In this document: positions 1-16,707 of the stretch, in pieces
Position numbering within the stretch: position 1 is the first letter of the stretch
How the letters are laid out: each line of letters opens with the position of its first letter
Source of the DNA: Hyalangium minutum
GTDB lineage: Bacteria; Myxococcota; Myxococcia; Myxococcales; Myxococcaceae
Direction: 5' to 3'
DNA length: 64,000 bases
Assembly (NCBI RefSeq): GCF_000737315.1
Contig: NZ_JMCB01000006.1
Coordinates: 434,001-498,000, forward strand
Translations under genes and position numbers: made by a program
Notes under the pieces: model-generated
The model's database searches: none
Seen by the model: only the letters and a program-made list of their open reading frames with translations
Told to the model about the DNA's origin: nothing

Positions 1-581
1 GCGTACACCGTCGCGTCGAACGAGGTGGGGTGCTCTCCCTGCAGGAATGGCTTGTCACCCAGCAGCACTGCCACGGCGGTGAGGTCCGCCTTGCCCATCT
101 CCAGGACCTCCTCGGGCTGGTGACGCCCCATCCCCTGGGCCCGGCTCGCCTTGATCATACCCCGGCGGATCAGCGACGGAACGACCTTGCCGACGACAGG
201 TGGGAACAAGGACTCGAAGATGGGCCGGTTGACCGTCCACCCATCCTCCGCGATCCAGCGGTCATGGATGATGTTCCAATAGGTGCTCTCCTCCAGCATG
301 CGGCGCACGGCGTGGCCCGTGGCGGACTGCTCCGGGGTGAGCTTCGCGTCCAGCACGTCCCCGTGCTTGCGCTTGAGGTGCTCGATGATGTGCTGGGAGT
401 CCCCCAGGAACTTCCCGTCCTCCTCGATGAAGGGGATCTTCCCTTTCGGGGCCTTCCCGAAGCCCCCCACGGCCACCGTGTAGGGAACCTTCGTCATCCG
501 GAGGTAGCTCTCCAGCTTGAGGCAATACGGGCTGATGTTGGCGACGCCCCAGGCGGCCGGTCCTTGATACAGGGTGATCAT
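1..581 (-). CDS. Glutathione S-transferase-like protein (metaxin/FAX-type), 3' end runs off the window
   Basis: Manual translation from ATG at 581: MITLYQGPAAWGVANISPYCLKLESYLRM...APKGKIPFIEEDGKFLGDSQHIIEHL. SPYC, GKIP and DS motifs of the GST N-domain; GGGAG RBS; absent from the ORF track because there is no stop in the window. Confidence 0.85.
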   Translation of the reverse strand, partial: MITLYQGPAAWGVANISPYCLKLESYLRMTKVPYTVAVGGFGKAPKGKIPFIEEDGKFLGDSQHIIEHLKRKHGDVLDAKLTPEQSATGHAVRRMLEESTYWNIIHDRWIAEDGWTVNRPIFESLFPPVVGKVVPSLIRRGMIKASRAQGMGRHQPEEVLEMGKADLTAVAVLLGDKPFLQGEHPTSFDATVY

Positions 582-597
582 TGTTCTCCCTCGTGGG

Positions 598-1929: not shown

Positions 1930-2020
1930 GTGTGCTCCGGAAATTCACCGAAAAATCGGCCGGGAAGATCCTTCGCGCGCCCCGTTAGGTCAACGAACCT
2001 CGACACACGGAGCTGCTTCC

Positions 2021-3145
2021 ATGAAGAACTTCTCGCTTCCCTCCACCCGCTCGCTGCTCGCCGCAGGGCTCGCGTTCGCCAGTCTCACCACGCTGGGCTG
2101 CGACCCGGCGGCTCAGCCCCCCGAGCCCCCGAGCTACGAGGAGCAGCTGAAAGCGTTCGATCCCGCGCAGTCGCCGGACTGGAAGCTGGAGGGCATCGTC
2201 CCGCAGCGCGAGCACGCCGAAGGCGAGGCGATGGACCCGGCCGCCCCTCCGAAGGTTCCCTCTGGGGACTACCTCATCCTGGCCGACGGCCGCATGTTCC
2301 GGTACGTGGGCCAGGAGCCGCTGCCCGAGGCGCTCTTCAGCGGCGGCGGCAGCGACCGGGGCGAGGACGTGGACGCCGCGGGGCTGGGCTCGCAGGAGCA
2401 GGGCATCATCATCGGCACGGATGGCCGCAGCGTGGTCACCAGCGACACGACGCTGCGCGCCTGGCCGCACCGCTCCATCGGGGCGGTCATCTACAGCTCG
2501 ACGGCCACCAGCGGCGGCTGCACCGCGACGATGATTGGCCCTCGGCACGCGGTCACCGCAGCGCACTGCCTGCATGATGGCGCGGGCACGTGGTACTGGC
2601 CGCTGTACTTCTCCCCGGGTCACAAGGGTGAGGGCAGCGACCGCACGCCGAACGGGGCCTACCGCAAGGTCGTGGCCCGCTACGCGCGGACCTACGATGC
2701 GGGCTGGGACTACGGGCTGCTCATCCTCGAGGACCGGCCGGAGACGGCAAGCCTGGGCTGGCTGGGCTTCGGGTGGTGGAGCAGCGACTCCTTCTATGAG
2801 GACCGTGCGCTGCGCGTCTTTGGCTACCCGGGAGCGAACTACGCGTGCGCGGCCTCGCCGAACTCGGACGGCACCTGCGGCGGGTACATGTACCAGTCGT
2901 TCTGCTCGGTGTCCGACTACTCGAGCGACGTGCTGTACCACCAGTGTGACACCCAGAACGGCAACAGCGGCTCGGCGCTGCAGAGCTGGGTGGGCAGCGA
3001 CCTGTACGTGATTGGCGTGCACAAGGGCGCTCCGAACTCGACCGCCAACTACGGGCCGCGCTTCACGCAGCAGAAGGCCTCGGTGGACCTGTGCGGCTGG
3101 ATCAAGCAGTGGCCGAGCATCTACGCCTCGCGCAGCTGCAACTGA
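2021..3145 (+). CDS. Secreted trypsin-like (V8/glutamyl endopeptidase-type) serine protease, probable lipoprotein
   Basis: Signal/lipobox LTTLGC; catalytic motifs TAAHCL, DYGLL, GNSGS; start at ATG 2021 after GGAG. Confidence 0.88.
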   Translation: MKNFSLPSTRSLLAAGLAFASLTTLGCDPAAQPPEPPSYEEQLKAFDPAQSPDWKLEGIVPQREHAEGEAMDPAAPPKVPSGDYLILADGRMFRYVGQEPLPEALFSGGGSDRGEDVDAAGLGSQEQGIIIGTDGRSVVTSDTTLRAWPHRSIGAVIYSSTATSGGCTATMIGPRHAVTAAHCLHDGAGTWYWPLYFSPGHKGEGSDRTPNGAYRKVVARYARTYDAGWDYGLLILEDRPETASLGWLGFGWWSSDSFYEDRALRVFGYPGANYACAASPNSDGTCGGYMYQSFCSVSDYSSDVLYHQCDTQNGNSGSALQSWVGSDLYVIGVHKGAPNSTANYGPRFTQQKASVDLCGWIKQWPSIYASRSCN

Positions 3146-3175
3146 CCTACCGGTGGCCCTGCGGCACCTCTTGGG

Positions 3176-3200
3176 CTTGCCGCCATGAGTAGGCGGCGAG
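3176..3200 (+). terminator. GC-rich hairpin downstream of the protease gene
   Basis: CTTGCCGCC-ATGAGTA-GGCGGCGAG, 9-bp stem including one G-U pair; no U tract. Confidence 0.35.
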
Positions 3201-3245
3201 CCCGAGCCTGGATGGGCATAAGCACCTCCCCACGAACAGGGAGGT

Positions 3246-3482
3246 ATGCGGATGTCCCGACGTTTCTCTACCCGAACGCTCCTGAGGGCGCTGCGCGCGC
3301 TCGGCTGCCGCCCAGGGCCAGCGCGTGGTGGCTCTCACCAGACCTGGCTCACCCCCGGTGGCGCCACATTGACCGTGGTGTTGGGCCGCCGTGGCGCAGC
3401 GGTCTCCCCAGGAACCGAGGCCAGCATCCGCCGCACGCTGGGGCGAGAGGGACTGAGCCTCTGTCCACGTAGGCGTAGGTAG
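3246..3482 (+). CDS. hicA: HicA-family mRNA interferase toxin
   Basis: 78 aa, basic; pattern LLRALRALGC...RGGSHQTWLTPGG.TLTV...VSPGTEASIRR matches the HicA dsRBD-like fold with GSH motif; GGAGG RBS. Confidence 0.75.
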   Translation: MRMSRRFSTRTLLRALRALGCRPGPARGGSHQTWLTPGGATLTVVLGRRGAAVSPGTEASIRRTLGREGLSLCPRRRR

Positions 3483-3520
3483 TCCCTCCCCTTGCCGCCA
3501 GGGGTTGGCTGCCGCGTGCG

Positions 3521-5218
3521 GTGCCTGAGCACATCCTGAGCGAGAAACCCTCGGAGGTCTCTACACTGCTCGCTCCCGGCTCTATGAGTAACTTTCCCCC
3601 TTCCCACACCGCTTCCGGCGCACCCCAGCCCGAGGCTCCCTTGCCCACCAGTGGCGAGATCATCGGGTTTCTCGCGAAGACGATGGAGTGGTCCTTCGAG
3701 CCTGTAAAGCCGCGAACCTGGCGGAACTTCACCGCCGGCAAGCGCGTCAGCATGGAGACGCGACAGGCGGTCTTTCGAGAGCTGGCGGGCATGTTCGTGA
3801 CGGCAGCCCCCACGGCCGATCCCGAAGTTCACGAAGCGCTGCTGGCAGAGGCGGAACACCTGTTCTCCTCGAATGCGGACTGGTGGGACGGTCTCGTCCG
3901 TTTGGTGGCCAGCATCCCCGCCGCTGACTCGGCCCGGCTCACGCCCCAGGTCGCGCTCCGACTTGCAACCAGCGAGCTCGCCCAGCGCTTCGCCGCAGTC
4001 CTCGCGCTGGTCCGACAGCCCTGTCCCTCCGAGGAGCTACCCGACTGGCTTCAAGAAAATGCGATGCGGGACACGCTCCGAGCGCTCTTAAAAGGGGCCG
4101 GGGTCACACGGGAGGCACTCGCCACGGCCTGCAAGGTAGAGAAGCAAGCCGTGGACAAGTGGTTGGACGCGCCCCTTCCTCCAGACAGGCGCATCAAGAG
4201 CATCGTCAATGTGAGCTTGAAACAGCTGCCGCCCGAGGCGCGTCGCGAGGTCAGTGATGACCTGCTCAGGCTGCGCTTGAAGGCGAAGCTCGCGGAGCGG
4301 CTCGCGGCCAGGATCGGATGGCCAGAGTTGAAGGAGCTCGGCAGGGCCTTCTTCCGGCTCACGCGATCGGCTCTCGCGGCACTCGAACAGGTCTCCTTCG
4401 CCTCAGACGAAGAGCGCGCCCGCCAGCTCGTAGAGTGGCTGAGGATGGGCAGCGATGCCCCGATAGCCCAGAAAATCCAGCCCCGGGTCGCGGCAGCCGA
4501 GCGAGATAGATACTGGGCTCAAGTGGCGCAGCTCTCCTCGGAGGCCTGGTTCAAGCGACTCATGCTCGCCCAGCGCTTGCCCACGGCGCTCTCCAGGCTC
4601 AGAGAGATCATCAACTCGAAGCAGGTGCGCCACTACAACCCGGCCCATCTGGAGCTGATGGAGCGCATCCTGATGCGAGCCCCCTTGGCCCCGGAGGCGG
4701 TGGTCGATTTCCTGTCAGGTTCCTACCCTGGCTCAGATCCCGATGACGGGCCGAGGGATGCGTACGAATTCTATGTCCAACGGTTCGACGACATTCTGAA
4801 GGAACCCGACCGGGTTGTCGCCGTGCGGCGGCTCGAAAGGATCATCGACCTGCTGCCTCTGTGCATTGAAGTCAGGCCAGATACCCGCCTGCGAGGGGAC
4901 TTCGAACGGCTGGCCTGCCGCTATCACTGCTTGCGAGTCCTCCGGCTCCTTGAGCAGTACCAGGACACTCAGCGCCCTGGTGCCAGCATTCTCCTGCCCA
5001 CCGCGCGCTCCGCGGTGGAACAAGCCCTCCAAGAGCTGAGCCTTGCGCTGTCGGCCCTCAATGCGGAGCAGTCCCAGAACTCGCGTGAGGATGTTCAGCG
5101 GGCCAGGGCCACCCTGGTAGCCCTTCAGCAAGCACTGGAGCAAGGTGACACGCAGACCGCCGTACGTCTCGCGGGCACACTCTCACTCGACACCCAGGAG
5201 CCGCGCTCCACCCCTTAA
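3521..5218 (+). CDS. Large hypothetical protein with internal XRE-type HTH (start may be ATG 3584)
   Basis: Segment LRALLKGAGVTREALATACKVEKQAVDKWLDAPLPP (~4064-4190) fits the Cro/C1 HTH pattern; remainder predicted helical; more A/T-ending codons than flanking genes. Confidence 0.6.
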   Translation: MPEHILSEKPSEVSTLLAPGSMSNFPPSHTASGAPQPEAPLPTSGEIIGFLAKTMEWSFEPVKPRTWRNFTAGKRVSMETRQAVFRELAGMFVTAAPTADPEVHEALLAEAEHLFSSNADWWDGLVRLVASIPAADSARLTPQVALRLATSELAQRFAAVLALVRQPCPSEELPDWLQENAMRDTLRALLKGAGVTREALATACKVEKQAVDKWLDAPLPPDRRIKSIVNVSLKQLPPEARREVSDDLLRLRLKAKLAERLAARIGWPELKELGRAFFRLTRSALAALEQVSFASDEERARQLVEWLRMGSDAPIAQKIQPRVAAAERDRYWAQVAQLSSEAWFKRLMLAQRLPTALSRLREIINSKQVRHYNPAHLELMERILMRAPLAPEAVVDFLSGSYPGSDPDDGPRDAYEFYVQRFDDILKEPDRVVAVRRLERIIDLLPLCIEVRPDTRLRGDFERLACRYHCLRVLRLLEQYQDTQRPGASILLPTARSAVEQALQELSLALSALNAEQSQNSREDVQRARATLVALQQALEQGDTQTAVRLAGTLSLDTQEPRSTP

Positions 5219-5336
5219 CCATCGGCCGTCGCAAGGGAGTGGTGGCGCAGGGCCAGGAAGAAGTCAGGCAAGCTGGCAAGCCAGGTGCGTGACTGCCGAA
5301 CCTGTCCTCCCGTGATTTCGTGGTATCGGGAAAGAC

Positions 5337-7016
5337 GTGGAGACGCGCCCCACCCTCTTCGAGCCACAGCCGGACCCTCGCTCCGTCTCCGAGGCCTTTC
5401 CGAGCCCGTTCGATGAGCTGGGTCCCTCCGCGCTGGCCCGCCGCGCCGCGGAGGTGATGCAGGCGGAACTCCGAGGAGGCCTCATCGCCCCCGGGCTCCC
5501 GGCGGCGCTGCTCGATGGACCCGAGGGCGGCAAGATGTTCGGCGTGCTGGTGGTGCGAGAGCCCGGCGGCCGCGTGGGCTTCCTGCGCTCCTTCTCCGGC
5601 ATGCTCGCGGGGCGGTGGGAGGTCGAGGGCTTCGTCCCCCCCCTCTTCCACCGCACCGCCCGGGAGCAGGTGGAACCGGCGGGGGAGGCCACGGTGAAGG
5701 CACTGCTCGCCCGCTTCGAGGCGCACCAGTCCTCGGAGGAGCTGCGAGCGGTCCGCTCCGCGTACGCGTCCCAGGAGGCACGCCACGCCGAGGAGCGGGC
5801 AGCGCTGCGAGCCCGGCACGACGCGAACCGGAAGCGGCGCCACGTCCGGAGGGCGGAGCTGGAGGCATCTGTCACGCTCACGGAGGCGGAGCGGCACGAG
5901 GCCCTCCATGCGCTGGACCAGGAGAGCCGGGGAGACAAGGCGGAGAAGCGCCGGGCCGACGCCGCACAGGAAGAGGAGCGACGGGCGCTGCTACCCCAGA
6001 AGGTGAAGCAGGAGCGGCGCCTGCGATCCCTGGAGCGCCTCCGGCAGAAGGTCTGCCGTGAGCTGATGAAGCGGATCCACGACACCTACGAGGTGCCCAA
6101 CGCACGAGGCGAGCACCAGCCCTTGCGAGCCCTGTACGGCGTTGGGGAGCCGCCCTCGGGTGCTGGAGACTGCGCGGGGCCCAAGCTGCTCGCCTACGCC
6201 TTCCGGAACGGGCTGCGTCCGCTGGCCCTGGCCGAGTTCTGGTGGGGCGCGCCACCACCTGCGGGAGGACGCATCGCCGGAGCGTTCTATGCGGCATGCC
6301 AGGACAAGTGTGGGCCGCTGCTCCCGTTCATGCTGGAGGGCCTGGAAGTCGCGCCTCCTCGGACGTTCGCACCGCCAGCGGTGGTGGCAGATAACCTGTC
6401 CATCGTCTTCGAGGATCCGTGGCTGGTGGTGGTCGACAAGCCCGCGGGGCTGCTCTCGGTGCCTGCACGCGACACGTCCGTGACGGACTCCGTGCTCGCA
6501 CGGCTGCGCGCCCGGTATCCCCGCGCGATGGGGCCGCTCCTCGTACACCGGCTGGATCTAGACACGTCCGGGCTGCTCGTCGCGGCGCTCGACCCGGAGA
6601 CGTACGTGGACCTGCAGCGGCAGTTCACAGGCCGCGAGGTCCAGAAGCGCTACGTGGCGTGGCTTGCGGGGGACGCCCGAGGTGAGCGGGGCACCATCGA
6701 CTTCCCCATGCGCGTGGACCTGGAGGACCGGCCCCGGCAGATCTACGACCCCGTGCACGGCAAGGCCGCCGTCACCGAGTGGCAGGTCCTCGAGCGCCGC
6801 GGCGGCCGCACCCGGGTGGCCTTCTTCCCGCTCACGGGCCGAACCCACCAACTTCGCGTGCACGCGGCGCATCCGCTCGGCCTCGGTGCGCCCATCGTCG
6901 GAGACCGGCTCTACGGGCACGAAGAGGGTCGCCTGCACCTGCACGCGGAGGCCCTTTCGTTCCGGCACCCCAAGACAGGGCAGCAGCTCTCATTCGAGCG
7001 GCCTGCCCCCTTCTGA
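5337..7016 (+). CDS. RluA-family pseudouridine synthase with long N-terminal extension
   Basis: VVDKPAGLLSVP, HRLDLDTSGLLV (catalytic Asp), TGRTHQLRVH, IVGDRLYG, LHLHA. Confidence 0.92.
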   Translation: METRPTLFEPQPDPRSVSEAFPSPFDELGPSALARRAAEVMQAELRGGLIAPGLPAALLDGPEGGKMFGVLVVREPGGRVGFLRSFSGMLAGRWEVEGFVPPLFHRTAREQVEPAGEATVKALLARFEAHQSSEELRAVRSAYASQEARHAEERAALRARHDANRKRRHVRRAELEASVTLTEAERHEALHALDQESRGDKAEKRRADAAQEEERRALLPQKVKQERRLRSLERLRQKVCRELMKRIHDTYEVPNARGEHQPLRALYGVGEPPSGAGDCAGPKLLAYAFRNGLRPLALAEFWWGAPPPAGGRIAGAFYAACQDKCGPLLPFMLEGLEVAPPRTFAPPAVVADNLSIVFEDPWLVVVDKPAGLLSVPARDTSVTDSVLARLRARYPRAMGPLLVHRLDLDTSGLLVAALDPETYVDLQRQFTGREVQKRYVAWLAGDARGERGTIDFPMRVDLEDRPRQIYDPVHGKAAVTEWQVLERRGGRTRVAFFPLTGRTHQLRVHAAHPLGLGAPIVGDRLYGHEEGRLHLHAEALSFRHPKTGQQLSFERPAPF

Positions 7017-7131
7017 GCAACGTCTCGGCCAGAAGCCCACTCGCACCTGAGGCGAAGGGAAGCGTTGTTCGGCGGCCCCAGCATGTCCACGCTCGCGCGA
7101 GGACGCCGTGGGCCGCCTCAGTATGGGCGGG

Positions 7132-10100
7132 TCACGGAAGAGATGTTGCACGCCCCAATTGTTCCGACACCTCGTTTCGAAACTCCTGCAGGGCTACGGT
7201 GTGTCCCTTCGGAGCCCTCTCCAGGAGAGGCTGGATGAGCTGCAGGAGTTCCCGCCAAGGTTCTAGCTCCGCCGCTGGAAGTTCGGCGCTTCCCGCCAGA
7301 AGAATGAGCCCGGCGGTCGCCCATACCCACTCGAGTTCATCTCTGGCTCCTGACCAACGTGTGTAGTCTCGAGAACGGGCGAATGGCACGGCGAGTTGTC
7401 GCCGCGCCTTGTCGACGACCGCGCGTATGGCCTTGAGCTGCGCCTCTCGTGCTTCTCTCGTTGCGCGGACCAAGCTCCAGGCGACGGCCTCGGACAGGTC
7501 GGGGTCCTCGTGCTGGTTGAACATGTAGGAGCGCGGCTCCGTCCCGATGAGACTCTTCAGTCGGGTCTCCAGAAGCGTTCCCCAGTGCTTCAGGACGTCA
7601 TCCCATGTCAGCTTTCCCGCGGTGACAAGGGGCGCGAGGAGTTCTTGGGTGGTGGACAGCGCCCACCCGGCCTCACCGGGGCCTCCGAGCCGGGAAACGA
7701 GCGGGAGTTGCTGGGCTCCCTCCGGAGAGGGAGGCCAAAGAGCGATGAGCGCATCGAAGAGCTGCATGCGCACTGTGCGCACGTCCTCCGTCTCTTGGAA
7801 GTCGTTGCGGTTGGCTTGCACTCGCAGCTCGCTCGTCATCTCGGCGAGTGCAACGAGTCGCTCCGTGAGTTCCAGTTGCTGAAGCTGCTGAAGGGCGTCC
7901 GAAACGGTAGCGGCGTGGGCCACGCGAGCAGTCGCGAGCGCGCGCATGAAGGGGATCGAGGAGCGGAACATCCGAGAGGTGAGTGCTCCTCCATTATCAT
8001 CATGAAGCGCGTCCACGATGGCCCCGAGGGCAGGAAGCAAGACATGCATCGCCGCCACATGGGCGGGGTCATTGCTGTGTCTCTGGGCCTCCGGGGGGAG
8101 GCGGACGGCCACTTGTTCGACGACACCCACCAACCTCTCGGGGGCAACCTCCGCCAGGTCATTCACTGCGCTGCGGACCGAGCGGTTCTGCTCCCCATAG
8201 TAGCGGAAACGATACGAATCCAGGGACTGCGCATCGTCCAGCACCTGGGCATAGGGGCGAAAGAAGAGGTGGCCGAGGCCAATGGCTCCCGGGTCTAGCG
8301 CTACGCCTTTCGTCCCGAATGGGGCGTCGCGCCACGGAGCGCTCGCGAGCAGTTGCTCAAGCCGTGAAGCCAGGCGTGGCATGCGCCGCGCGAGTTCCTC
8401 CTCGAACGCGCGCCTTTCCCCCTGCAGCTCCGCCCTCCAGGAAGAAAGGGCCATCCAGAGCCTCAGGAAGGTCGCTTCGTCGGCCGTGATCATCTGCTCA
8501 ATGAATGGGTCCAGGACCTGGAGTGCGGCGGGTGATGGCTCATAGCGGCCATTCACCAGGAGGTGAGCCGCTTCGAGCGAGGTCCGGAGCCTCATCTCAT
8601 CGAGACCTTCAAGCGCGGGGTCACCGAGCAAGCGTGAGAAGAACAGCGCCGCGTCTGGAACGCCCTTCGGGCCCGGCTGCTGCAGGCGCCCCTTGCGCTC
8701 CGCGCCCGACGCGAAGAGGGTGACGAGCTGCGCGTTGGGAACCACTTGAGGATCCGCAGCACGAAGAGCTGCGATGTACTCTCCCACGGACTCGAGCGTG
8801 TCGGGCGGGATGGGGACCACGAGCAAAGGTGCGTTCCTGGTGGCCCCCTGAAGCGAGTTGGAGAGTACGAACCCCTTCACCAACTGCGCTTCATCTCCGT
8901 AGACCAGGATATAGCGATCATGGAAAAGCTCGTCCCGGTTATTCCCCTTGCTCTGCAGATCGAGGACGGTGAGTCGAAGCTGCGCCAGAACTCCCAGGAG
9001 GTTCTTGCATGTCTCCGGGATGCGCTCGCGTCTGGGCTTCTTCTTGGGCTCTCCCTTCGGGCTCTCATCGTCCTTGGACGGCACCTGTGTATTTGTCAGG
9101 ACGACATACTCCGCCTGCGTACCCCGTGCCCGTCCGAGGAACTCGTAGATGCCGACGTCATCGAAAAAAGGGTCCACGATGACGAACGCAGTGGCGGACG
9201 CGTCGTCGGTCAGCTCACGGAACCATTCAACGAACCCGAGAAGCCCGGGCCCCTCCTGCTTGTCCCATCCTTTGGGAAAGAAACGCGCTTCGGAGCGCTC
9301 CGGAAAGAGCCGTGCGGCCAGTGCACTCGCGGCCTGCTCCGCCAGCTCGCGCGAGGACCGCTTTCCAGTGGAGCTGATTCGATAGGAGACCTGGTCGATG
9401 GCTCTCACCTTCGCGGCGCGCTCTTTGACTTGCTTGTGCGCCCGTTCCATGGACTGGGTCCATGGGGTCTCCAGGTGGCCTTTCAGGCCCGAGACACCCA
9501 TCCCCATGGACATCTCTCGGATGAGAGGGCTGTCACTTTCGAACCAGATGTGTGCGTTGTCGTTCTTGTCGAGGTACCAGATGGTCACGAGGATTCGGGT
9601 CAGTTCACTGGTGCAGGGGAACTCCAGCAGCGGCCCTCCGACGGACGTATGCCGGCACTCGTCATGGGCGACCTCCTCTCCATAGTAGAGCCGACACCGC
9701 GCTAGGAGGCGCGTGCCGGTGGGGAGAGGACCCGGGTGCACGCTGACCTGCACGGCCTTGGCAATGATTTCGTCGTCCTCGTCACGTTCGCGCCGCGTGC
9801 GGACCGTCACGAACTTGTTCTCGAAGACATCGGTCGCACTCGGGCATATCCACTCGATGTCGCCGAGACGCTTGGCATCCGCTCCAGTGAAGACGAGTCC
9901 CGTTTCGCTCTCGAGGTACTCGAGGCAGCCGCGCGCGAGATCATCCGCACCCGGGAGGGTGTCGCGAGTCGGGCGAGCGCCCGGAGGTGGTGAGCCTGGG
10001 CCCCGTTGCTTCACCCACAGTTCGATCTTCCTCGCATCGGTCACCGCGCAACTGCGGACAGGACTCGATGAGGAGGGGCTGGTCAGCGGTTGCCGTGTGC

Positions 10101-10581
10101 GGACGCGCGACGGCCCGGTCACACTTGGCGAGAGAAAGCGGATGGGGCCCGGCGCATATCGGCGGGCGACCGCTCCGGCATCCTCGCCCAAGCGGAGCTC
10201 TCCAAAGAACTCGGGGGCCGAGAGGCCAGCCACGGCACAGCTCTCGGAGAGCGTGCGAGCCTCCCCCAAGCCTTTGAGGACCGCGTTGACATGCCGAGGA
10301 AGGGCCGTGAGTGTGAGCCGAACCATGCGGTACTCGCCAGCCGTGGCGCTCCCAGGCTCCAGCTTCTTCCAGTCGGGTTTGGTTGCGGCCCAATGGCCCG
10401 TCACCTCCCCGGGTGACGGGACGACCCAGCCGTAGAGCAGTCGCGTCTCGCTGCCGGTAGGCAGGTGCAGTTCGAGCAGCCACAGGCTCAGCTGCGCGAG
10501 GGTGCCGGAGCTGTCGGAGGCCAGGGCACGAAAGCGCGCGTCGTCGGCGAGGAGAGCGAGGTGTTGGGCAAAGGGATTCAT
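7132..10581 (-). CDS. VPA1262-like protein with PLD-superfamily nuclease-like domain
   Basis: 1149 aa; N-terminal LWLLEL...RLLYGWVVP recalls the VPA1262 N-domain (from memory); central IVDPFF ... FHDRYILV ... GFVLSNSLQG is a PLD-like HxR/K nuclease signature; long helical C-terminus. Confidence 0.62.
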   Translation of the reverse strand: MNPFAQHLALLADDARFRALASDSSGTLAQLSLWLLELHLPTGSETRLLYGWVVPSPGEVTGHWAATKPDWKKLEPGSATAGEYRMVRLTLTALPRHVNAVLKGLGEARTLSESCAVAGLSAPEFFGELRLGEDAGAVARRYAPGPIRFLSPSVTGPSRVRTRQPLTSPSSSSPVRSCAVTDARKIELWVKQRGPGSPPPGARPTRDTLPGADDLARGCLEYLESETGLVFTGADAKRLGDIEWICPSATDVFENKFVTVRTRRERDEDDEIIAKAVQVSVHPGPLPTGTRLLARCRLYYGEEVAHDECRHTSVGGPLLEFPCTSELTRILVTIWYLDKNDNAHIWFESDSPLIREMSMGMGVSGLKGHLETPWTQSMERAHKQVKERAAKVRAIDQVSYRISSTGKRSSRELAEQAASALAARLFPERSEARFFPKGWDKQEGPGLLGFVEWFRELTDDASATAFVIVDPFFDDVGIYEFLGRARGTQAEYVVLTNTQVPSKDDESPKGEPKKKPRRERIPETCKNLLGVLAQLRLTVLDLQSKGNNRDELFHDRYILVYGDEAQLVKGFVLSNSLQGATRNAPLLVVPIPPDTLESVGEYIAALRAADPQVVPNAQLVTLFASGAERKGRLQQPGPKGVPDAALFFSRLLGDPALEGLDEMRLRTSLEAAHLLVNGRYEPSPAALQVLDPFIEQMITADEATFLRLWMALSSWRAELQGERRAFEEELARRMPRLASRLEQLLASAPWRDAPFGTKGVALDPGAIGLGHLFFRPYAQVLDDAQSLDSYRFRYYGEQNRSVRSAVNDLAEVAPERLVGVVEQVAVRLPPEAQRHSNDPAHVAAMHVLLPALGAIVDALHDDNGGALTSRMFRSSIPFMRALATARVAHAATVSDALQQLQQLELTERLVALAEMTSELRVQANRNDFQETEDVRTVRMQLFDALIALWPPSPEGAQQLPLVSRLGGPGEAGWALSTTQELLAPLVTAGKLTWDDVLKHWGTLLETRLKSLIGTEPRSYMFNQHEDPDLSEAVAWSLVRATREAREAQLKAIRAVVDKARRQLAVPFARSRDYTRWSGARDELEWVWATAGLILLAGSAELPAAELEPWRELLQLIQPLLERAPKGHTVALQEFRNEVSEQLGRATSLP

Positions 10582-10595
10582 GGTTCTCCGCTTCT

Positions 10596-11183
10596 CTAGA
10601 GGCCGTTGCGGGAGGGAGCCAGTTCCGTCCTGACGAGTTCGATGCGCATGATGGCCGCCGAATTGCGGACACAGAGATGAATATGCGAATGCGAGGTGTG
10701 TCCGGACTCGGGGTAGAGCGAGTTGCCCTCAAGATAGATTCCACGCAGGGTGTCGACCGGACGATCAAGCCCATCGCAGAGCAGATTGAAGACCAAGCAG
10801 TCGAGAGTACGCCTCTTCCCACGATTGGTGGGGGTGGGCTCTCCGCGCGCCTGGTACTCCCGCTCGATCTCCGCATAGGCCGCTTTAAGGAGCGAGTCGA
10901 AGTCCTGGCTTGGCAGGTTCACGCACGTGCCGAGCCGAATGGAGGCTTTCACCACGCCAATGGCCTCACCGGGAAACCGATCGTACGCCCACTGAATGGC
11001 CCGCTTTTGCGACTCCTCCCAGAAGTAGATGCCGTCGCCTAACCAGTCGTAGGGATTACGGCTCGGATGCATCTGCTGCTCGGCCACGATGAGATGCGCC
11101 TGCTCGGCCCGTGTGCCGTGGTAGCCGATGACGATGCGGTCCGGGTCCTGCTCCGGACTCTCTGGAAATGCGAAGAGCGGCAT
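10596..11183 (-). CDS. ADP-ribosyltransferase-fold protein (YHGT / DWLG.GIYFW family)
   Basis: VIGYHGT, SRNPYDWLGDGIYFWE, D.LRG.Y.EG..LYP, HIHLCVRN; ends 14 bp before the next gene, which has a GGAG RBS. Confidence 0.68.
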   Translation of the reverse strand: MPLFAFPESPEQDPDRIVIGYHGTRAEQAHLIVAEQQMHPSRNPYDWLGDGIYFWEESQKRAIQWAYDRFPGEAIGVVKASIRLGTCVNLPSQDFDSLLKAAYAEIEREYQARGEPTPTNRGKRRTLDCLVFNLLCDGLDRPVDTLRGIYLEGNSLYPESGHTSHSHIHLCVRNSAAIMRIELVRTELAPSRNGL

Positions 11184-11262
11184 GGGGACGGTGAAGGAGA
11201 GCGGATAGCACCTTCAATAACCCACCGCTTACCCCTCAGCGCTCTCTAGCGATAGAGGTACC

Positions 11263-11330
11263 GGCCATTGAAGGAGTGCGCCCTCGCAGGTTCAGGGCCC
11301 CCCTCCTACACGGGTTCAAGTCCCGTGGCC
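11263..11330 (+). ncRNA. Candidate tRNA-like structured element (T-arm plus acceptor-like stem)
   Basis: ACGGG-TTCAAGT-CCCGT is a perfect T-arm; GGCCA/TGGCC closes the element; long internal hairpin TGAAGGAG..GCCCT/AGGGC..CTCCTACA; no canonical D arm. Confidence 0.3.
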
Positions 11331-11418
11331 AAGCCCTAGGCCCGAGGGCGCGACAGCCCCCCTCTGTACGCTGCCCCTCGGAGCCACCGAGGTACGCACG
11401 GCTCCTGAGGAGGCACTC

Positions 11419-12795
11419 TTGAGCTCCGTGTACGCCTTCACCCAGGCCGGCACCACGACGGCCCTCACCGTGGGAGGCGAGGCCCTCTCCTTCCACGAGC
11501 TGCGGCGCGAAGTCGAGGCACGCAAGCAGCGCCTATCGGGCCTGCCACCAGGGATCGCCATCCTCCGGGCGAACCGAAGCTGGAAGTTCATCGCCAACTT
11601 CCTCGCCTTGTACGAGGCGGGCCTCCCTCAGGCGGTCTTCGCTCCTGAGTGGACCCCCTCGGAGGCGGAGATGCGCCGGCGGACGCTCGGGTGCTGCTTC
11701 GAGCTGGATGAGGACCTGGGCGCCAGCTGGCAGAGCGCGTCATCCTCGCCTCAGCACCACCCGGACACCTCACTGGTGCTGTTCACGTCGGGCAGCACGG
11801 GGGCTCCTCGTGCCGTGCAGCTCTCTCGCTGGAACATCGAGGCGAATGTCGCTGCCGTCCTGAAGTCCTTGGACTTCTCCACGGCGCGCACGCAGACCCT
11901 GTTCCTCCCGCTCTCATACTCCTTTGGGCTGCTGGGCCAGCTCCTGCCCGCGCTGGCGATAGGCCTGCACACGGAGCTACTCGGCAACCTCGTGGAACTC
12001 AAGGCCCGGCTCGAAGAGGCACGGCCCATCGGCATGATCAGCGGCGTGCCCTCACACTATGAAGCGCTGCTGCGCCTGCTCGGGTCCGGGTCCACGCTGG
12101 GAAAGGGTGTCACCCACGTGGTCTCAGCGGGCGCGGCGATGCCCCTGCCCCTGCGTCAGCGCCTGCTCCAGGCGTTCCCTTCGAGCCGCATCTACACGAA
12201 CTACGGCCAGACGGAGCTGTCCCCGCGAGTCCTCTGCCTGCGCAGCGACCACCCGGCCTTCTTGAGCAGCGCCACGGGCTTTCCCGTGGGCAATCTCTCC
12301 GTGAAGCTCACCGCCCAGGGAGAGCTGTGCGTGCGCGGGGATCAAGTGATGCTGGGCTACCTCGGTGCTTCCGAGGCCACGCGCGAGAAGGTCCAGGACG
12401 GCTGGCTCCATACCGGGGACGTGGCGGAGCTGAGTCCCGATGGACTGGTGACAATCCTGGGGCGCAACGACGAGCTGCTCAAGGTGGGCGGCGAGCGCCT
12501 GAGTCCCTTCGAGATCGAGGCGGCCCTGCGCGAACTCCCGGGCGTCGAGGAGGCCGCCGTGTGGGGACGGGAGGACCCGCTGTACGGGACCACCCTCACG
12601 GCCTTCCTGCAGTTCCGCTCGGGAGCACCCTGCCCTCCCAAGCGCGAGCTGCGCCAGGCGCTGCGTGAGCGCCTGTCCGTGCACAAGGTCCCGGCCGACT
12701 TCTACCGGGTGAGCCAGCTTCCCAGGACGGCGAACGGGAAGCTGCAGCGCCACCGGCTCGCGGAGTGCGTGCGGCCCGAGCACCGCATCGACTGA
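11419..12795 (+). CDS. AMP-dependent acyl-CoA/acyl-ACP synthetase (ANL superfamily)
   Basis: LFTSGSTGAP (P-loop), YGQTE, TGD, R..ELLKVGGERLSP, PRTANGKLQR; TTG start after GAGGAGG. Confidence 0.9.
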   Translation: MSSVYAFTQAGTTTALTVGGEALSFHELRREVEARKQRLSGLPPGIAILRANRSWKFIANFLALYEAGLPQAVFAPEWTPSEAEMRRRTLGCCFELDEDLGASWQSASSSPQHHPDTSLVLFTSGSTGAPRAVQLSRWNIEANVAAVLKSLDFSTARTQTLFLPLSYSFGLLGQLLPALAIGLHTELLGNLVELKARLEEARPIGMISGVPSHYEALLRLLGSGSTLGKGVTHVVSAGAAMPLPLRQRLLQAFPSSRIYTNYGQTELSPRVLCLRSDHPAFLSSATGFPVGNLSVKLTAQGELCVRGDQVMLGYLGASEATREKVQDGWLHTGDVAELSPDGLVTILGRNDELLKVGGERLSPFEIEAALRELPGVEEAAVWGREDPLYGTTLTAFLQFRSGAPCPPKRELRQALRERLSVHKVPADFYRVSQLPRTANGKLQRHRLAECVRPEHRID

Positions 12796-12796
12796 G

Positions 12797-13807
12797 CTAC
12801 AGGCTTCGGAGGAGCGCGCAAGCCGAGGCCCCCCCCGCCCCGGCCGAGATGAGCAGGATGCGCTGCCCAGGCTGGAGCGGCAGCTTCTCCTTGAGGTGCG
12901 CCAGCGCGATGCCCACGCTGGCCCCCGAGGTGTTGCCGGTGAACTGCACGGTCTCCACCACCTTGGCCCGGTCCGCGCCCAGCTTGTCCGTCATGGTCCG
13001 GATGAGGTGCAGGTTGGCCTGGTGGGGCACGAACCAGTCCACGTCGGCCAGCGTCAGCTCCAGGCGGCGCAGGAGCCTGGCCGCCGCAGTGGACATGTTG
13101 TCCACGCCCTTCATGAACAGCGTGGCCCCGTGCTCCATCTTGAGGAACACCTTCGCCGGGTCGGTGTTCTGGTGGTGGGGCAGCCGGGAACCGCCCGCGC
13201 GGATGGCGATGATGTCCGCCATGGAGGCATCCGCTGCCAGCTCGCTCGCGATGAGCTGGAAGTCCGCCTGCTCGCGGTTCCGAGAGACCAGACAGCTCGC
13301 GGCACCGTCTCCAAACAGCGCGGTGGTCGCCAGATCCTCCTTGTTCAGAAACTTGGAGCGGATGTCCGCAGCGATGACAAGTTGATCCGTGTCCGAAGCC
13401 TGCGCGAGCCCCGCCGCGACATGCACCGCACTGGTGAAGCCCGCACAGGCGGCGCTCAAGTCGAGCACGCCCACTCCATCCAGCCCGAGCTTGGGGAGAA
13501 TCAACGGAGAGCTGGGAGGCGTGGGGAAGTCGCCGGAGACGGTGGCCAGCAGCAGCTGGGTGATGCGCTTCCGGTCGATGCGGTAGTCCTCCAGCAGGCG
13601 CGTGGCTGCGGCCGCGGCGATGTCGCTGCAGGCCTGGCTGTCCTCGACCCAGTGCCGTTGCTCGACGCCGGTGCGGTGAGTGATCCAGCTAGGACGCGCG
13701 CGCGTGCCCATCCAGTCGAGCACGTCCTGGTTGGTAACGACGCGCTCGGGAAGCCAGGCCTTGGGCCCGAGCAGGTACACCGGCTCCGCAGGTCTCATGA
13801 AGCTCAT
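12797..13807 (-). CDS. FabH-like 3-oxoacyl-ACP synthase III (copy 2)
   Basis: TGVEQRH, LSAACAGF (Cys), FVPHQAN (His), TGNTSGAS (Asn); ATG 13807 overlaps the SDR stop (ATGA). Confidence 0.9.
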   Translation of the reverse strand: MSFMRPAEPVYLLGPKAWLPERVVTNQDVLDWMGTRARPSWITHRTGVEQRHWVEDSQACSDIAAAAATRLLEDYRIDRKRITQLLLATVSGDFPTPPSSPLILPKLGLDGVGVLDLSAACAGFTSAVHVAAGLAQASDTDQLVIAADIRSKFLNKEDLATTALFGDGAASCLVSRNREQADFQLIASELAADASMADIIAIRAGGSRLPHHQNTDPAKVFLKMEHGATLFMKGVDNMSTAAARLLRRLELTLADVDWFVPHQANLHLIRTMTDKLGADRAKVVETVQFTGNTSGASVGIALAHLKEKLPLQPGQRILLISAGAGGASACALLRSL

Positions 13808-14559
13808 GGACGCAACACTCCTTCCATCCGGAACATCGGCAGACCACCTGTGACGTCGAGCACTGCTCCATTGATGTACTGGTGCGCGGATAGCAGGGGA
13901 TCGAGCACCTCGCCCACGTGCTCGGGCTCGCCCAGCGTGCCTTGGGGGATGACTCCGCCCATCCGCTCCACGTAGTTCGGCCGGGACCAGTACTTCTTCG
14001 TCCGCGTCGTCTTGTAGATGCCCAGCCGGACGGTGTTGGACAGGATGTTGAGCGCGCCGTAGTCCACCGCGAGGTTGCGCACCAACCCCTCCAGCGCGGA
14101 CTTGCACAGCACGTAGGCGCCGTAGCGCCCAGTCCCGTTGACCGTCGAGACGCTGGAGATGAAGACGATGCGCCCGTACCGAGCCTCCACCATGGACGGC
14201 AGCACGCGGCGCAGCAGCCAGAGGTTCCCCATCAAGTTGGCCTGGACGTCCGCCTCGAGCGCCTCTTGAGGCAGCTCGTGGAAGCGGTGCAGCGGTGGCC
14301 GCCGCGTCCACGCGTTCAGCACGAGCCCCTGGAGCCCTCCCGCGAGCACCGGGGCCAGGGCCGGCTCGCTCACAGCCGGAGCAGACAGGTCCAGCACCAG
14401 GCCACGAGGCTCCAGCCCCTCCGCCTTGTACCGGGCCAACGTCTCGGCAAGAGACTCCTCGGAGGAGGCCGTAACGAACACCTCATCACCCAGCGAGAGC
14501 CGGCGGCGCACGATGGAGCGGCCAATGTCCGAGCCGCCGCCCGTGACGAGTACCCTCAT
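13804..14559 (-). CDS. SDR-family oxidoreductase (FabG-like ketoreductase)
   Basis: VLVTGGGSDIG, IVFISS, YVLCK (YxxxK); ATGA-coupled to the ACP gene. Confidence 0.9.
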   Translation of the reverse strand: MRVLVTGGGSDIGRSIVRRRLSLGDEVFVTASSEESLAETLARYKAEGLEPRGLVLDLSAPAVSEPALAPVLAGGLQGLVLNAWTRRPPLHRFHELPQEALEADVQANLMGNLWLLRRVLPSMVEARYGRIVFISSVSTVNGTGRYGAYVLCKSALEGLVRNLAVDYGALNILSNTVRLGIYKTTRTKKYWSRPNYVERMGGVIPQGTLGEPEHVGEVLDPLLSAHQYINGAVLDVTGGLPMFRMEGVLRP

Positions 14560-14816
14560 GACGCGCCCAGCCTCCGCATCCAGCCTGCCAGCGCATCGAG
14601 GTCCCGGAAGTACTCCTCGGAGAACTCGTGGCCGGAGATGCGCAGCGAGAACTCCTTCTCCAAAGCCGCCACGGAGAGCACCATCATCAGGCTGTCCATC
14701 CCATACAAGGACAGCTCCTCGGACGGGCTGGTCGGCAGCTCCGCCATGCCCGCAGCGCGCAGCGCCTTGCTGATCCGCTCGAACAGTTCCATCGCTTGCT
14801 CCACCCTTTCCGTCAT
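14556..14816 (-). CDS. Acyl carrier protein
   Basis: 86 aa, acidic; LYGMDSLMMV phosphopantetheine motif; LEKEFSLRI. Confidence 0.9.
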   Translation of the reverse strand: MTERVEQAMELFERISKALRAAGMAELPTSPSEELSLYGMDSLMMVLSVAALEKEFSLRISGHEFSEEYFRDLDALAGWMRRLGAS

Positions 14817-14835
14817 CCCAGTCTCCGGCCGTGGC

Positions 14836-15885
14836 TCAGCACTTCACCCAGTGCTGCATGGCGTAGGACAGGCCGCCGCCCACGCTCATCAGCAGCACCT
14901 CGTCTCCAGGCTCGAACAGGCCCTGCTCCAGCGCCTCGGACAGCGAGAACAGGACGGAAGCGCCGCCGATGTTGCCGAAGCGGTCCGCGCTCCAGACGAG
15001 GCGCCCCGTCAGACCGCTCTCCTGGCAGACCTGCTCGATGAGCTTCCGGTTGATCTGGTGGGCCACCACCCAGCGGATGCGCTCCAGGCCGCGCCCCTCG
15101 GGGAACAGCGCCCGCAGCATCTCCTTGTAGCGCCGCAGGGCCTCCTCCCGGAGCCGCGTGCCATCCCCCGCCATGAAGTAGCCGCCCTGCGCCAGCGTCT
15201 CCCTGTCCGGAGGCAGCTTCCCCGGCGTGGTGTACAGGTCCACCAGCATGCCGTCGGTGGCGTAGAGGCACTGGCGGATCTCGAAGTCGGGCGAGGCATC
15301 CTCTCGCCGCAGCCACAGCGCCGCGCCTCCGTCCGCGAGGATGAACCAGGTCTCCTTGAGCTCCGGGTTCATCACCTTGGAGAGCGTCTCCGCGCAGCTC
15401 ACCATCACGTTGCGGTAGCCGCTGCCCAGCAGCGCCACCGCCAGATGCAGGCTGGCCAGCGAGGTGGAGCAGCCCGCCTTCAGCTCCCAAGCAGAAGCAT
15501 GGCTGTCCAACCGTCCCAGGATGGCCGCAGCCTGCGAGCCCGTGTAGCGGCTCGTGGTCGTCGTGCCATGGATGAAGGCCTGCACCTCGGAGCCACCACT
15601 CACCCCGAGCGCCTGCCGCACAGCCTTCAGCGACAGCAGCTCACTGGTCTCCTCGCTCGGCGGAGGGGCCGCTCCATCAAAGCGAGGCATCCGCGCGAGG
15701 TACCGCTGGCTGAAGCCCAGCCGCGACGCCAGCTTCCGGCCGAGGGCCTCCAGCGCCTCGGGGGACCGCCCCTGCTGCTCGGGATCCAAAGCGAGCAGCT
15801 CGGCGTTGGACACGGGCCGCTCTCCGGGCCAGGAGCGTCCATGCCCCAGCACCTTCACGCCCAGGCGTGGCTCGAGAACGATCAC
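14836..15885 (-). CDS. FabH-like 3-oxoacyl-ACP synthase III (copy 1)
   Basis: LKAGCSTS (Cys), VVAHQIN (His), FGNIGGAS (Asn), MSVGGG; GTG at 15885 overlaps the upstream stop (GTGA). Confidence 0.88.
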   Translation of the reverse strand: MIVLEPRLGVKVLGHGRSWPGERPVSNAELLALDPEQQGRSPEALEALGRKLASRLGFSQRYLARMPRFDGAAPPPSEETSELLSLKAVRQALGVSGGSEVQAFIHGTTTTSRYTGSQAAAILGRLDSHASAWELKAGCSTSLASLHLAVALLGSGYRNVMVSCAETLSKVMNPELKETWFILADGGAALWLRREDASPDFEIRQCLYATDGMLVDLYTTPGKLPPDRETLAQGGYFMAGDGTRLREEALRRYKEMLRALFPEGRGLERIRWVVAHQINRKLIEQVCQESGLTGRLVWSADRFGNIGGASVLFSLSEALEQGLFEPGDEVLLMSVGGGLSYAMQHWVKC

Positions 15886-16685
15886 GGCGCACGCTCCTCG
15901 GGACGAGGCTCGGGACGGGGCTCGGGGGGCGGGGCCTCCTGCTTCCGAGCCGGGTTGAAGTGCTCCCACTCGAAGTTCTCGAGCCGCGAGTCCTCGGGCA
16001 GGGTGTCCTTCATGAGCCGGTTGTGCATGCCAATCCAGCTCCGCGAGCCGATCGTCGTCCGGGGACCGACCAGGGTGCCGGTGCCCAGGAAGACGTTGTC
16101 GCCAATGTCCACGGTCCCCAGCATCACCTTGTCCCCGAGGAACATGTGTCCGAGGACGAAGACGTTGGCGCCCATCGTGCAGCCCTTACCGATGCGCAGC
16201 AGCGGGTAGTCCGCCAGCAGCGCGAAGATGGACGAGTTCACCCCGTAGGCGATGCGCGCGCCCATGGCCCGCCAGTAGAGGTACTTGGTCAGGTAGAAGG
16301 TGAAGAAGAACGGCTGGAGCCCGGCAATGCGCACGGCATGCCCCAAGCACAGCGTCATGTACCAGGCGAGGTAGTCCCGGGACATCTCCATCTTGTACGT
16401 GCCCGGCCGCATGCGAGGGATGCACAGGCGGATGATCCAGCACGCCGCCAGGAACGCTCCGGCCAGCACCGCGGGCGCCAACATGGCCCACAGCACGAAG
16501 CCGAGCCGATCCCAGCTCCACCGCAGGTAGCTCACGAAGGCGGCCCACGCCGCCAGCCCAGGTGTCAGCGAGAAGCTCATCGTGATGAAGTCCACGAGGA
16601 GCACCCGCGTGAAGCCGAAGGCCTGGGACTGATGTTTGAACTTCTGCCGAGCGGTGCTCAGCGAAGCGGTCGCGCTGTCCGTCAT
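15882..16685 (-). CDS. Membrane-anchored left-handed beta-helix (hexapeptide repeat) acyltransferase-like protein
   Basis: Two or three hydrophobic segments followed by GARIAYG, IGKGCTMGANV, VDIGDNVFLGTGTLVGPRTTIG hexapeptide repeats. Confidence 0.75.
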   Translation of the reverse strand: MTDSATASLSTARQKFKHQSQAFGFTRVLLVDFITMSFSLTPGLAAWAAFVSYLRWSWDRLGFVLWAMLAPAVLAGAFLAACWIIRLCIPRMRPGTYKMEMSRDYLAWYMTLCLGHAVRIAGLQPFFFTFYLTKYLYWRAMGARIAYGVNSSIFALLADYPLLRIGKGCTMGANVFVLGHMFLGDKVMLGTVDIGDNVFLGTGTLVGPRTTIGSRSWIGMHNRLMKDTLPEDSRLENFEWEHFNPARKQEAPPPEPRPEPRPEERAP

Positions 16686-16707
16686 AGGTCCTCAGGGCCC
16701 TGCGGGC

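Follow-up and report, generated by a model that had tools for sequence, protein, structure and literature searches.

A Juno-family gene and an ADP-ribosyltransferase-fold gene form a candidate anti-phage operon in Hyalangium minutum

The window analyzed here, a stretch of 64,000 nucleotides from the Hyalangium minutum contig NZ_JMCB01000006.1 (positions 434,001 to 498,000), carries a two-gene, co-oriented operon: a small gene, coding for a protein with a predicted ADP-ribosyltransferase (ART) fold, comes first, and a large gene, assigned to the VPA1262 family, now called "Juno", comes second. The pair very probably consists of a defence gene of the Juno family and a true operon partner with an ART fold. 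The coordinates of genes, domains and motifs are reported in Table 1. They uphold the description, given in the original prediction, of two co-oriented genes separated by 14 bp, here placed on the minus strand, and the DPFF, HDRY, SNS and YHGT motifs are found at the positions where it had located them.

The codon usage of the two genes had also been described as less biased towards G and C at third codon positions (GC3) than that of the neighboring genes. This is indeed the case: GC3 is 0.75–0.77 in the operon (0.750 for the large gene, 0.765 for the small one) and 0.86–0.89 in the neighbors (RluA-like, 0.864; AMP-binding, 0.876; the two KAS III genes, 0.878 and 0.881; SDR, 0.869). Regional GC is 0.62–0.65 over the cassette, compared to 0.68–0.72 in the surroundings and 0.689 in the whole window, and the drop is concentrated at third codon positions. 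Chance open reading frames (ORFs) of a high-GC genome are ruled out by homology and by the GC1/GC2/GC3 pattern: the genes are regarded as real, because relatives are abundant for both (664 for Juno, at least 552 metagenomic stretches for the transferase, see below).

Table 1. Position of genes, domains and motifs of the operon within the window (aa, amino acids; AF2, AlphaFold2; counts refer to 122 Juno representatives)
Feature	Positions	Strand	Basis
Large gene (Juno/VPA1262 family), 1149 aa	7132-10581	minus	ATG start, ORF list
C-terminal all-helical solenoid, ARM/HEAT-like (predicted), aa 640-1149	7135-8664	minus	AF2 helices throughout, Foldseek
Central alpha/beta domain with conserved core, aa 430-625	8707-9294	minus	Conservation, AF2 confidence ~70-87
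SNS motif, aa 574-576	8854-8862	minus	S574 121/122, S576 122/122, N575 110/122 (Thr in 11)
HDRY motif, aa 554-557, candidate catalytic His/Arg	8911-8922	minus	H554 and R556 122/122, D555 121/122
DPFF motif, aa 470-473	9163-9174	minus	D470 and P471 122/122
Beta-sandwich, probably FN3/Ig-like, aa 258-352	9526-9810	minus	AF2 strands; FN3 placement inferred
N-terminal beta-rich domain, aa 1-150	10132-10581	minus	AF2 secondary structure, pLDDT ~64-91; no fold assignment obtained
Intergenic spacer, operon junction, 14 bp	10582-10595	minus	GGAG ribosome-binding site, 6 nt before the large-gene ATG
Small gene (CmdT-like ART fold), 195 aa	10596-11183	minus	ATG start, ORF list
H167, invariant His opening strand 167-172	10683-10685	minus	Alignment and AF2 strand order
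Y53, invariant Tyr of GIYFW	11025-11027	minus	About position 41 of the CmdT profile
YHGT, aa 21-24, with invariant H22 of the NAD-binding triad	11112-11123	minus	36-sequence alignment
Upstream non-coding region of the cassette and junction with the conserved chromosome	11184-11310		Comparison with L133 and L134

By profile matching, the large protein is assigned as a full-length member of the VPA1262/Juno family. It scores 796.9 bits (E = 2.6e-239; cut-off 325) against the NCBIfam model NF040699 (VPA1262), with residues 31–1087 matched to positions 2–1026 of the 1026-position profile, and 230.9 bits (cut-off 80) against NF040700, the VPA1262 N-terminal domain, at residues 212–607. It matches no family in Pfam and none in PADLOC, whose 2023 library predates Juno. 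When representatives at 50% identity are searched exhaustively with a profile, 664 relatives are recovered, of which 309 have E < 1e-30; most relatives are 1,050–1,190 amino acids long and matched end to end. A word-indexed homologue search started from Juno gave 10 proteins. Alignment and neighbor-joining tree were built from 122 full-length representatives, to most of which the window protein is 19–47% identical. One related Juno is annotated as originating from a metagenome-assembled genome (MAG) of Polyangia. The family also occurs in archaea: a relative in a Methanobacteriaceae MAG (L019, 3818–7244) is split over two ORFs (profile matches at 3818–5089 and 5055–7244), which could mean that the gene is frameshifted or a pseudogene, or that the assembly is in error.

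The VPA1262 family was renamed "Juno" in a preprint of August 2026 (10.64898/2026.08.01.741415), where it is presented as a widespread defence made of a single gene: in E. coli, the protection conferred by each of two homologues, from P. agglomerans and V. parahaemolyticus, exceeded 100-fold. Four coliphages are countered by Juno homologues; neither a domain analysis nor a mechanism is offered (10.64898/2026.08.01.741415). The founding gene, VPA1262, sits in the mobile VPaI-6 GMT island. The window protein shares with the described Junos the length class (about 1,050–1,190 amino acids) and the DP[YF]F / HDR / S[NT]S core; it also shares an accessory-genome location, the founding member lying in VPaI-6. 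Described Junos, however, are single genes from Gammaproteobacteria, whereas that of the window stands second in an operon, behind an ART-fold partner, in a high-GC host. The locus had been proposed as a candidate anti-phage system with no named counterpart. The first part of this proposal stands: an anti-phage role of the operon is likely, because its large protein belongs to the VPA1262/Juno family, two members of which protect in E. coli. The second part has to be narrowed, since Juno is already known and named as a single-gene defence, and what is undescribed is its pairing with the transferase.

In the AF2 model, Juno begins with a beta-rich part, continues with a central alpha/beta domain and ends in a long helical part, in agreement with the beta-rich N-domain and helical C-domain that had been anticipated. 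When the model is compared to the PDB by Foldseek, an FN3 domain (5dft) is matched with a template-modelling (TM) score of 0.70 and a root-mean-square deviation of 3.5 over 96 columns. The best matches of the C-terminal solenoid are a designed ARM protein, beta-catenin, importin-beta and the PP2A scaffold; this part of the model is a candidate sensor or scaffold. A Foldseek comparison of the model with viral structures gave nothing interpretable.

Conservation is focused on the central domain. W453 is found in 122 of the 122 representatives, and G240 and P585 are also among the few fixed positions. The family signature, DP[YF]F ... [FL]HDRY ... LS[NT]SxQ, lies entirely within residues 453–585, and the window protein has every one of the invariant core residues (W453, D470, P471, H554, D555, R556, S574, S576). 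We take this domain, with its DP, HDR and SNS residues, to be the catalytic or effector centre of Juno: most likely, the site would be of the phosphodiesterase or nuclease type, on a scaffold resembling that of phospholipase D (PLD), with an Arg replacing the Lys of the HKD motif.

The large protein had been likened to PLD nucleases. Of this comparison, a weak resemblance at the fold level survives. The Foldseek search matches Juno to the DUF1669 domain of FAM83B (5lzk_A; E = 0.047, probability 1.0, TM score 0.58, 192 columns), which is itself a PLD-like pseudo-enzyme domain. In local mode, hhalign aligns the central domain to five Nuc-family PLD nucleases from plasmids (P = 0.027), laying F-H-D-R-Y-I-L of Juno on I-H-D-K-V-I-I of Nuc, and H554 on the His of the HKD motif. 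In Juno (HDRYILV) as in Nuc (HDKVIIV), a hydrophobic strand begins with a His that precedes a basic residue by two positions; as in HKD nucleases, such as Nuc of IncN plasmids and BfiI, a Ser/Asn-rich turn is found on the next strand. The order of the elements around the conserved residues in the AF2 model is strand-helix-strand-helix-strand-strand-strand-strand-helix; the same order is found in PLD domains, which provides a lead rather than a test.

The motif itself does not survive. In place of HxK(x)4D(x)6G(S/T)xN, Juno reads F-H-D-R-Y-I-L-V-Y-G ... G-F-V-L-S-N-S: the spacing is HxR(x)5D, S-N-S stands for G-S-x-N, and one motif copy is present per chain. The Lys position is occupied by Arg in 122 of 122 representatives, where the turn is S-[NT]-S. 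Judged by these residues, the core is not a canonical HKD domain, and filing Juno as a PLD nuclease was rejected, because the HKD motif test failed; it may still work like one. The scaffold may be PLD-like, the resemblance being weak and limited to the fold, and a nuclease activity of Juno is conceivable. Single-sequence searches of both operon proteins against PDB sequences gave no matches.

The ART fold, predicted for the small protein, is well supported. Its AF2 model reaches a pLDDT of 95.8, and nearly all of the 50 PDB matches listed by Foldseek, the check proposed for this protein, are ARTs (exotoxin A, PARP1/2/4, NatT), with E values from 1e-4 to 4e-3 and TM scores of 0.35–0.46; one non-ART match is a cyanophage pre-ejectosome chain. 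The model is confidently assigned to the ART fold, within the diphtheria-toxin/PARP clade. At the profile level, the window protein has a sub-threshold match to Pfam PARP; sub-threshold matches to PARP2, PARP4, exotoxin A and cholix toxin are located over the His- and Tyr-bearing segments. Pfam PARP recognizes 10 of 36 aligned relatives, and Exotox-A_cataly one. The PADLOC check, also proposed, was productive for this protein and not for Juno: PD-T4-9_A, the CmdT model, is matched with E = 2.1e-5, and the same model is matched by all 36 aligned family members (best E 2.8e-9).

The residues invariant in the 36-sequence alignment are G20, H22, S41, D46-W47-L48-G49, G51, Y53, F54, R147, H167 and R173. 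The His and Tyr signatures of the NAD+ site, H-G-[ST] and G-x-Y-[FI], are present as GYHGT and GIYFW. In the seven Juno-linked transferases, H22, Y53, R147 and H167 are always kept, while R173 is kept in six and replaced by Leu in L042; a clade-specific N-terminal motif, M-[AP]-L-F-x-[FL]-P, is found in six of the seven. The third position of the triad, normally a catalytic Glu, Asp or Gln, would correspond to H167, as placed by strand order and not by superposition; if the correspondence holds, the site would be His-Tyr-His. Isoelectric points, compared across transferase classes, provide no clear pointer to the substrate.

PD-T4-9 is the CmdTAC system, composed of the toxin CmdT, the antitoxin CmdA and the SecB-like chaperone CmdC (PMC11618068, PMC9519451). 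CmdT is a diphtheria-toxin-family transferase, which ADP-ribosylates mRNA and is inactivated by the Y41A change; for its homologues, the third residue of the triad is reported as Glu, Asp or Gln (PMC11618068). The window protein and CmdT are similar in size (195 amino acids, against a model of 191 positions), belong to the same ART clade and are encoded by the first gene of an operon; the match to the model takes in the triad's His and Tyr. The likeness is, however, confined to the N-terminal half, and a His is found at the inferred third position instead of Glu, Asp or Gln. The window operon, moreover, has no CmdA-like or SecB-like gene, the partner being a defence protein of 1149 amino acids. 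Identity with CmdTAC was rejected on these grounds: the operon has two genes, with no antitoxin and no chaperone.

A transferase gene is found directly upstream of Juno in the window and in seven distinct loci, always in the same order and orientation, with a spacing of 0–15 nt. The conserved pairing, whose absence would have spoken against the original prediction, is thereby observed: it recurs in one branch of the Juno family. The junction is a 14-nt spacer, as in the window, in L133, whose DNA is 86.7% identical to the window, and a 15-nt gap in L006/L007 (Juno 36% identical to that of the window). An ATGA stop/start overlap is present in four linked loci: L001, represented also by L002 (Juno 47% identical), L005 (38%), L142, represented also by L143 (38%), and L042 (about 27%), where the Juno fragment is the N-terminus of representative P0080. 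The neighbor-joining tree of the 122 Junos gathers the linked ones in one clade, which comprises 11 representatives and to which P0080 is nearest. From its position in this tree, P0041 (L142) was predicted to have a transferase beside it before the locus was looked up, and the transferase was found (E = 1e-61).

Within the linked clade, no transferase is seen without Juno. The L010 locus contains a Juno 87% identical to that of L001, and the transferase gene is absent; about 19 final transferase codons, 74% identical to P0004, are found at 6922–6978, upstream of the intact Juno. Because these codons survive, the transferase is considered to have been lost secondarily: the remnant is a deletion scar, and Juno outlives the loss of its partner. 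The remnant stands behind an unrelated gene for a 440-aa LprI-like protein.

Outside the clade, no transferase is present in the flanks that were read, those of the Junos from Coleofasciculus, Symplocastrum, WOR-3, Archangium gephyra, the Methanobacteriaceae MAG and a Nostoc plasmid; the plasmid Junos of Anabaena, Agrobacterium (two) and Shewanella were left out of this reading. A scan of a genome collection revealed seven Juno loci, none with the transferase. In two Coleofasciculus MAGs (L008, 11573–12202; L014, 6670–7314), Juno is followed by a 209-aa protein, matched by PADLOC as PD_DExK of the CRISPR-associated type (E = 1e-51), which may be a different, lineage-specific accessory of Juno. 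On the Nostoc plasmid, Juno has defence-type neighbors (L137, 7368–11240), namely a DUF2290 protein, an ATPase and a type I methyltransferase.

The transferase family extends well beyond Juno. It is found in at least 552 metagenomic stretches, 31 IMG/VR contigs and 69 plasmids, and corresponds to phrog_14664, a family of unknown function which matches the window protein with E = 5e-16; all 69 plasmid copies are labelled "hypothetical protein". The genes adjoining the transferase in about 118 loci were grouped into partner classes. The most frequent one, U1 (49 loci), is located upstream, abutting or overlapping, and codes for basic proteins of 57–100 amino acids (isoelectric point, pI, about 10). 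D1 (14 loci) is a small downstream partner homologous to U1. D2 (12 loci), also downstream, is a CapH/XRE-like helix-turn-helix (HTH) protein of about 343 amino acids. Juno, of about 1,110–1,150 amino acids, is the downstream partner in the window and in the seven distinct loci described above. When the transferases are arranged in a tree, they separate into clades according to partner class, those linked to Juno forming a group apart.

U1 and D1 share an "aGi...kGkl" motif; their loci include L003, L011, L013 and many of L047–L132, and further examples of small partners are found in L135 (2299–3061) and L136 (2301–3094). These small-partner modules are carried by plasmids, prophages and viral contigs; the U1 order is clearly seen, for example, on an Acinetobacter plasmid of 8.5 kb and on a conjugative plasmid of Rhizobium. 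D2 is found in L022–L029, L032, L035, L038 and L041 (in L029, for example, at 1345–2376), its C-terminus matching PADLOC capH (E = 1e-11); among the transferases not linked to Juno, those of these loci are the closest. In L059 (4977–8915), a small upstream partner and the transferase are directly followed by a 1112-aa UvrD-helicase/PD-(D/E)XK protein, GajB-like according to PADLOC.

Type II toxin-antitoxin modules may contain an ART as the toxin, DarTG being an example. Most relatives of the small protein are, similarly, part of two-gene modules with an overlapping or abutting gene for a 57–100-aa basic protein; to judge by their sequences, these small-partner modules look like a toxin-antitoxin family that has escaped annotation. 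The small gene, a candidate antitoxin present in 63 related loci, is absent from the window, where Juno stands in its place: no homologue of U1, D1 or D2 is encoded anywhere in the window. The pattern is that of a toxin-like enzyme, nearly always paired with a cognate partner, and in one sub-clade Juno takes the position of the small partner. Hidden Markov models (HMMs) of U1 and D1 match neither Juno nor the 343-aa D2 protein; the possibility that Juno or D2 contains the small-partner domain was accordingly rejected.

The placement of the operon between rluA and a biosynthetic cluster, as originally described, agrees with the family matches of the flanks. Beyond the 3' end of Juno lies an RluA-type gene (PseudoU_synth_2, 5337–7016, plus strand). 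On the other side, from 11419, genes for AMP-binding, two KAS III, SDR and ACP proteins, transcribed divergently from the cassette, resemble a fatty-acid/polyketide-like cluster. Two related contigs differ from the window in this region. L133 contains the same cassette in a different upstream context, the similarity to the window ending at about 11269. L134, a metagenomic contig, matches the window with 90.5% identity over the whole biosynthetic cluster, starting at 11310 (11310–19738, 8.4 kb); upstream of that point it features a TPR gene and neither of the cassette genes, within only 760 nt of contig, and this TPR gene is absent from the whole window. The L134 contig also encodes hexapeptide-repeat, zinc-ADH and DUF2378 proteins, where the window, whose ORFs are unannotated there, is 90.5% identical. 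DUF2378 is a myxobacterial paralogous family; with the GC of the window and the Juno annotated from a Polyangia MAG, it points to a probable myxobacterial host.

The cassette, therefore, sits in a variable locus. Other linked loci have mobile or defence genes as neighbors: relaxase, TraG, ArdC and integrase genes in L005; SIR2 and HepT genes in L006; TIR and Fic genes in L142 (4775–7252), the TIR protein being of the CAP12/PCTIR type. On the basis of low GC3, the context of L133, the comparison with L134 and the mobile-gene neighbors of related loci, the operon is regarded as horizontally acquired. As to the marks of such an event, no tRNA genes are present in positions 1–20000 of the window, direct or inverted repeats flanking the cassette are limited to short chance pairs, and no integrase marks an insertion in the window. 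No sigma-70-type promoters were found, and all terminator-like hairpins are inside coding sequences.

Two features of the RluA side are of note. The RluA-type protein is 559 amino acids long, with a pseudouridine synthase domain only at residues 363–512 and an Arg/Glu-rich N-terminal extension of about 350 residues without family match. Beyond its gene lies an ORF of 565 codons (3521–5218, plus strand), whose GC3, 0.774, is as atypical as that of the cassette. The encoded protein matches no family in Pfam, NCBIfam or PADLOC, and the only match, weak and HTH-like, links residues 181–231 to phage repressor PHROGs; the ORF may be another acquired gene.

The explanation that we favor as a whole, with moderate confidence, is that of an acquired anti-phage operon, in which Juno is accompanied by a CmdT-like transferase acting as a second effector and restrained by Juno. 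The solenoid and beta domains of Juno would sense infection, while its HDR/SNS centre would act as an effector of its own. In the uninfected cell, Juno would hold the transferase inactive; upon sensing infection, it would release or activate it, and the cell would be hit by two chemistries, the effector activity of Juno and NAD-dependent ADP-ribosylation, the latter probably directed, like that by CmdT, at RNA or some other nucleic acid. The outcome would be the abortion of the infection.

The restraint and release of the transferase by Juno is the more tentative part of this scheme. Juno may keep the transferase in check because members of the transferase family are nearly always partnered and no other partner is available in the window. 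The same conclusion is drawn from stop/start coupling, the transferase gene appearing translationally coupled to Juno, and from the co-diversification of the transferase clade with the type of partner. It is drawn, finally, from the asymmetry of losses: Juno survives without the transferase, and no reverse case was seen within the clade. A further step, rather doubtful at present, would see Juno co-opted as a 1,150-aa "sensor-antitoxin" of a His-Tyr-His ART toxin family, with a single sensing event firing both phosphodiester cleavage and ADP-ribosylation of nucleic acids.

A number of observations weigh against this explanation. The tested Juno homologues function as single genes, and the Juno of L010 persists without its transferase: because of these two facts, the transferase is regarded as dispensable and any coupling as an add-on. 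Phage protection by this clade of Junos, and in this host, is presumed, as is the contact between Juno and the transferase. The AF2 model of Juno is of moderate quality only (pLDDT 71.8, pTM 0.44). The PLD-like reading of its core, drawn from one Foldseek match and one local alignment, is a hint only: hhalign in global mode against the five-sequence Nuc-family alignment gives a probability of 0.07, and the central domain against Nuc alone a probability of 0.2; a Pfam search with 31 central-domain sequences, at E values up to 10, returns no PLD family, and profile searches with the Juno family and the central domain against PDB sequences return noise only (TRAPPC3, catalase, glucosaminidase). 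For the transferase, the CmdT match of the window protein is limited to 53 residues (17–69). Where Glu, Asp or Gln is reported for CmdT, at the presumed third catalytic position, these proteins have an invariant His, making activity uncertain, and the Juno-linked transferases are mildly acidic (pI about 6), which lends no support to a nucleic-acid substrate. The activity of a transferase with His for Glu is, like the substrates of both proteins, presumed.

Some of these same observations would fit a different role of the small protein, which we consider unlikely: rather than a second toxin, it could be a regulator or adaptor of Juno, either ADP-ribosylating Juno or its target, or tuning its sensing as a pseudo-enzyme able to bind NAD+ or ADP-ribose. 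H167 in place of the expected acidic residue is compatible with such a role, as are the stop/start coupling, suggestive of a stoichiometric complex, the N-terminal motif found in six of the seven Juno-linked transferases, and the presence in Juno of an effector-like core of its own, Juno working alone in other species. Yet H22, Y53, R147 and H167 are kept throughout the family, including its toxin-antitoxin-like members from plasmids and phages, and R173, invariant in the 36 aligned sequences, is changed among the Juno-linked transferases only in L042. Because catalytic-type residues are so widely kept, a single conserved enzymatic activity, needing neutralization, may be supposed for the whole family; the related CmdT is, moreover, a proven toxin (PMC11618068).

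The two genes could also be independent defence or toxin genes, merely adjacent as in defence islands, with the transferase as a stand-alone effector or an orphan toxin. The autonomy of the tested Junos would be in line with this, and so would the promiscuity of the transferase in its neighbors, exemplified by the UvrD/PD-(D/E)XK protein of L059, and the different neighbor, a PD-DExK protein, of cyanobacterial Junos. Mere adjacency, however, accounts poorly for the same order, orientation and 0–15 nt spacing in eight independent loci, with Juno identities down to about 27%, for the separate clustering of the Juno-linked transferases, whose Junos fall in one sub-clade, and for the success of the tree-based prediction of context; nor is an alternative neutralizer found in the window. 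Chance adjacency is thus regarded as quite improbable.

Within the scheme of a transferase released by Juno, the chemistry might be that of an NAD glycohydrolase, infection being aborted by Juno-triggered depletion of NAD+. Depletion of NAD+ is a common outcome of abortive infection in bacterial defence, and the His-for-Glu change could alter the chemistry of the site. No sequence feature points specifically to hydrolysis, and the nearest characterized relative transfers ADP-ribose to mRNA (PMC11618068), so that little credit is given to this variant. Least probable of all, and very unlikely, is a service to a mobile element (addiction, exclusion) or a function in interbacterial toxicity, to which the occurrence of transferase relatives on small plasmids, beside partition or transfer genes and in prophages, and the location of VPA1262 itself in a mobile GMT island might allude, while Juno homologues protect against four coliphages (10.64898/2026.08.01.741415) and, as far as family matches go, signal peptides being left out, no secretion-related family is seen in the operon proteins or the flanks.

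For the study of Juno, this locus offers both residues and architecture: the near-invariant D470, H554, R556, S574 and S576, and an arrangement of beta domains, a divergent PLD-like core and a predicted ARM/HEAT solenoid. The locus represents a natural variant, in which Juno would be wired to a second, chemically different effector. The small protein, in turn, exposes a large family of "hypothetical" proteins, which looks like a modular ART toxin, whose neutralizing partner differs by lineage. Should Juno indeed restrain the transferase, the operon would exemplify the fusion of a toxin-antitoxin module with an autonomous immune sensor into one system; otherwise, the analysis would still be useful as an annotation, for Myxococcota-like genomes, of a defence family that was described only recently.

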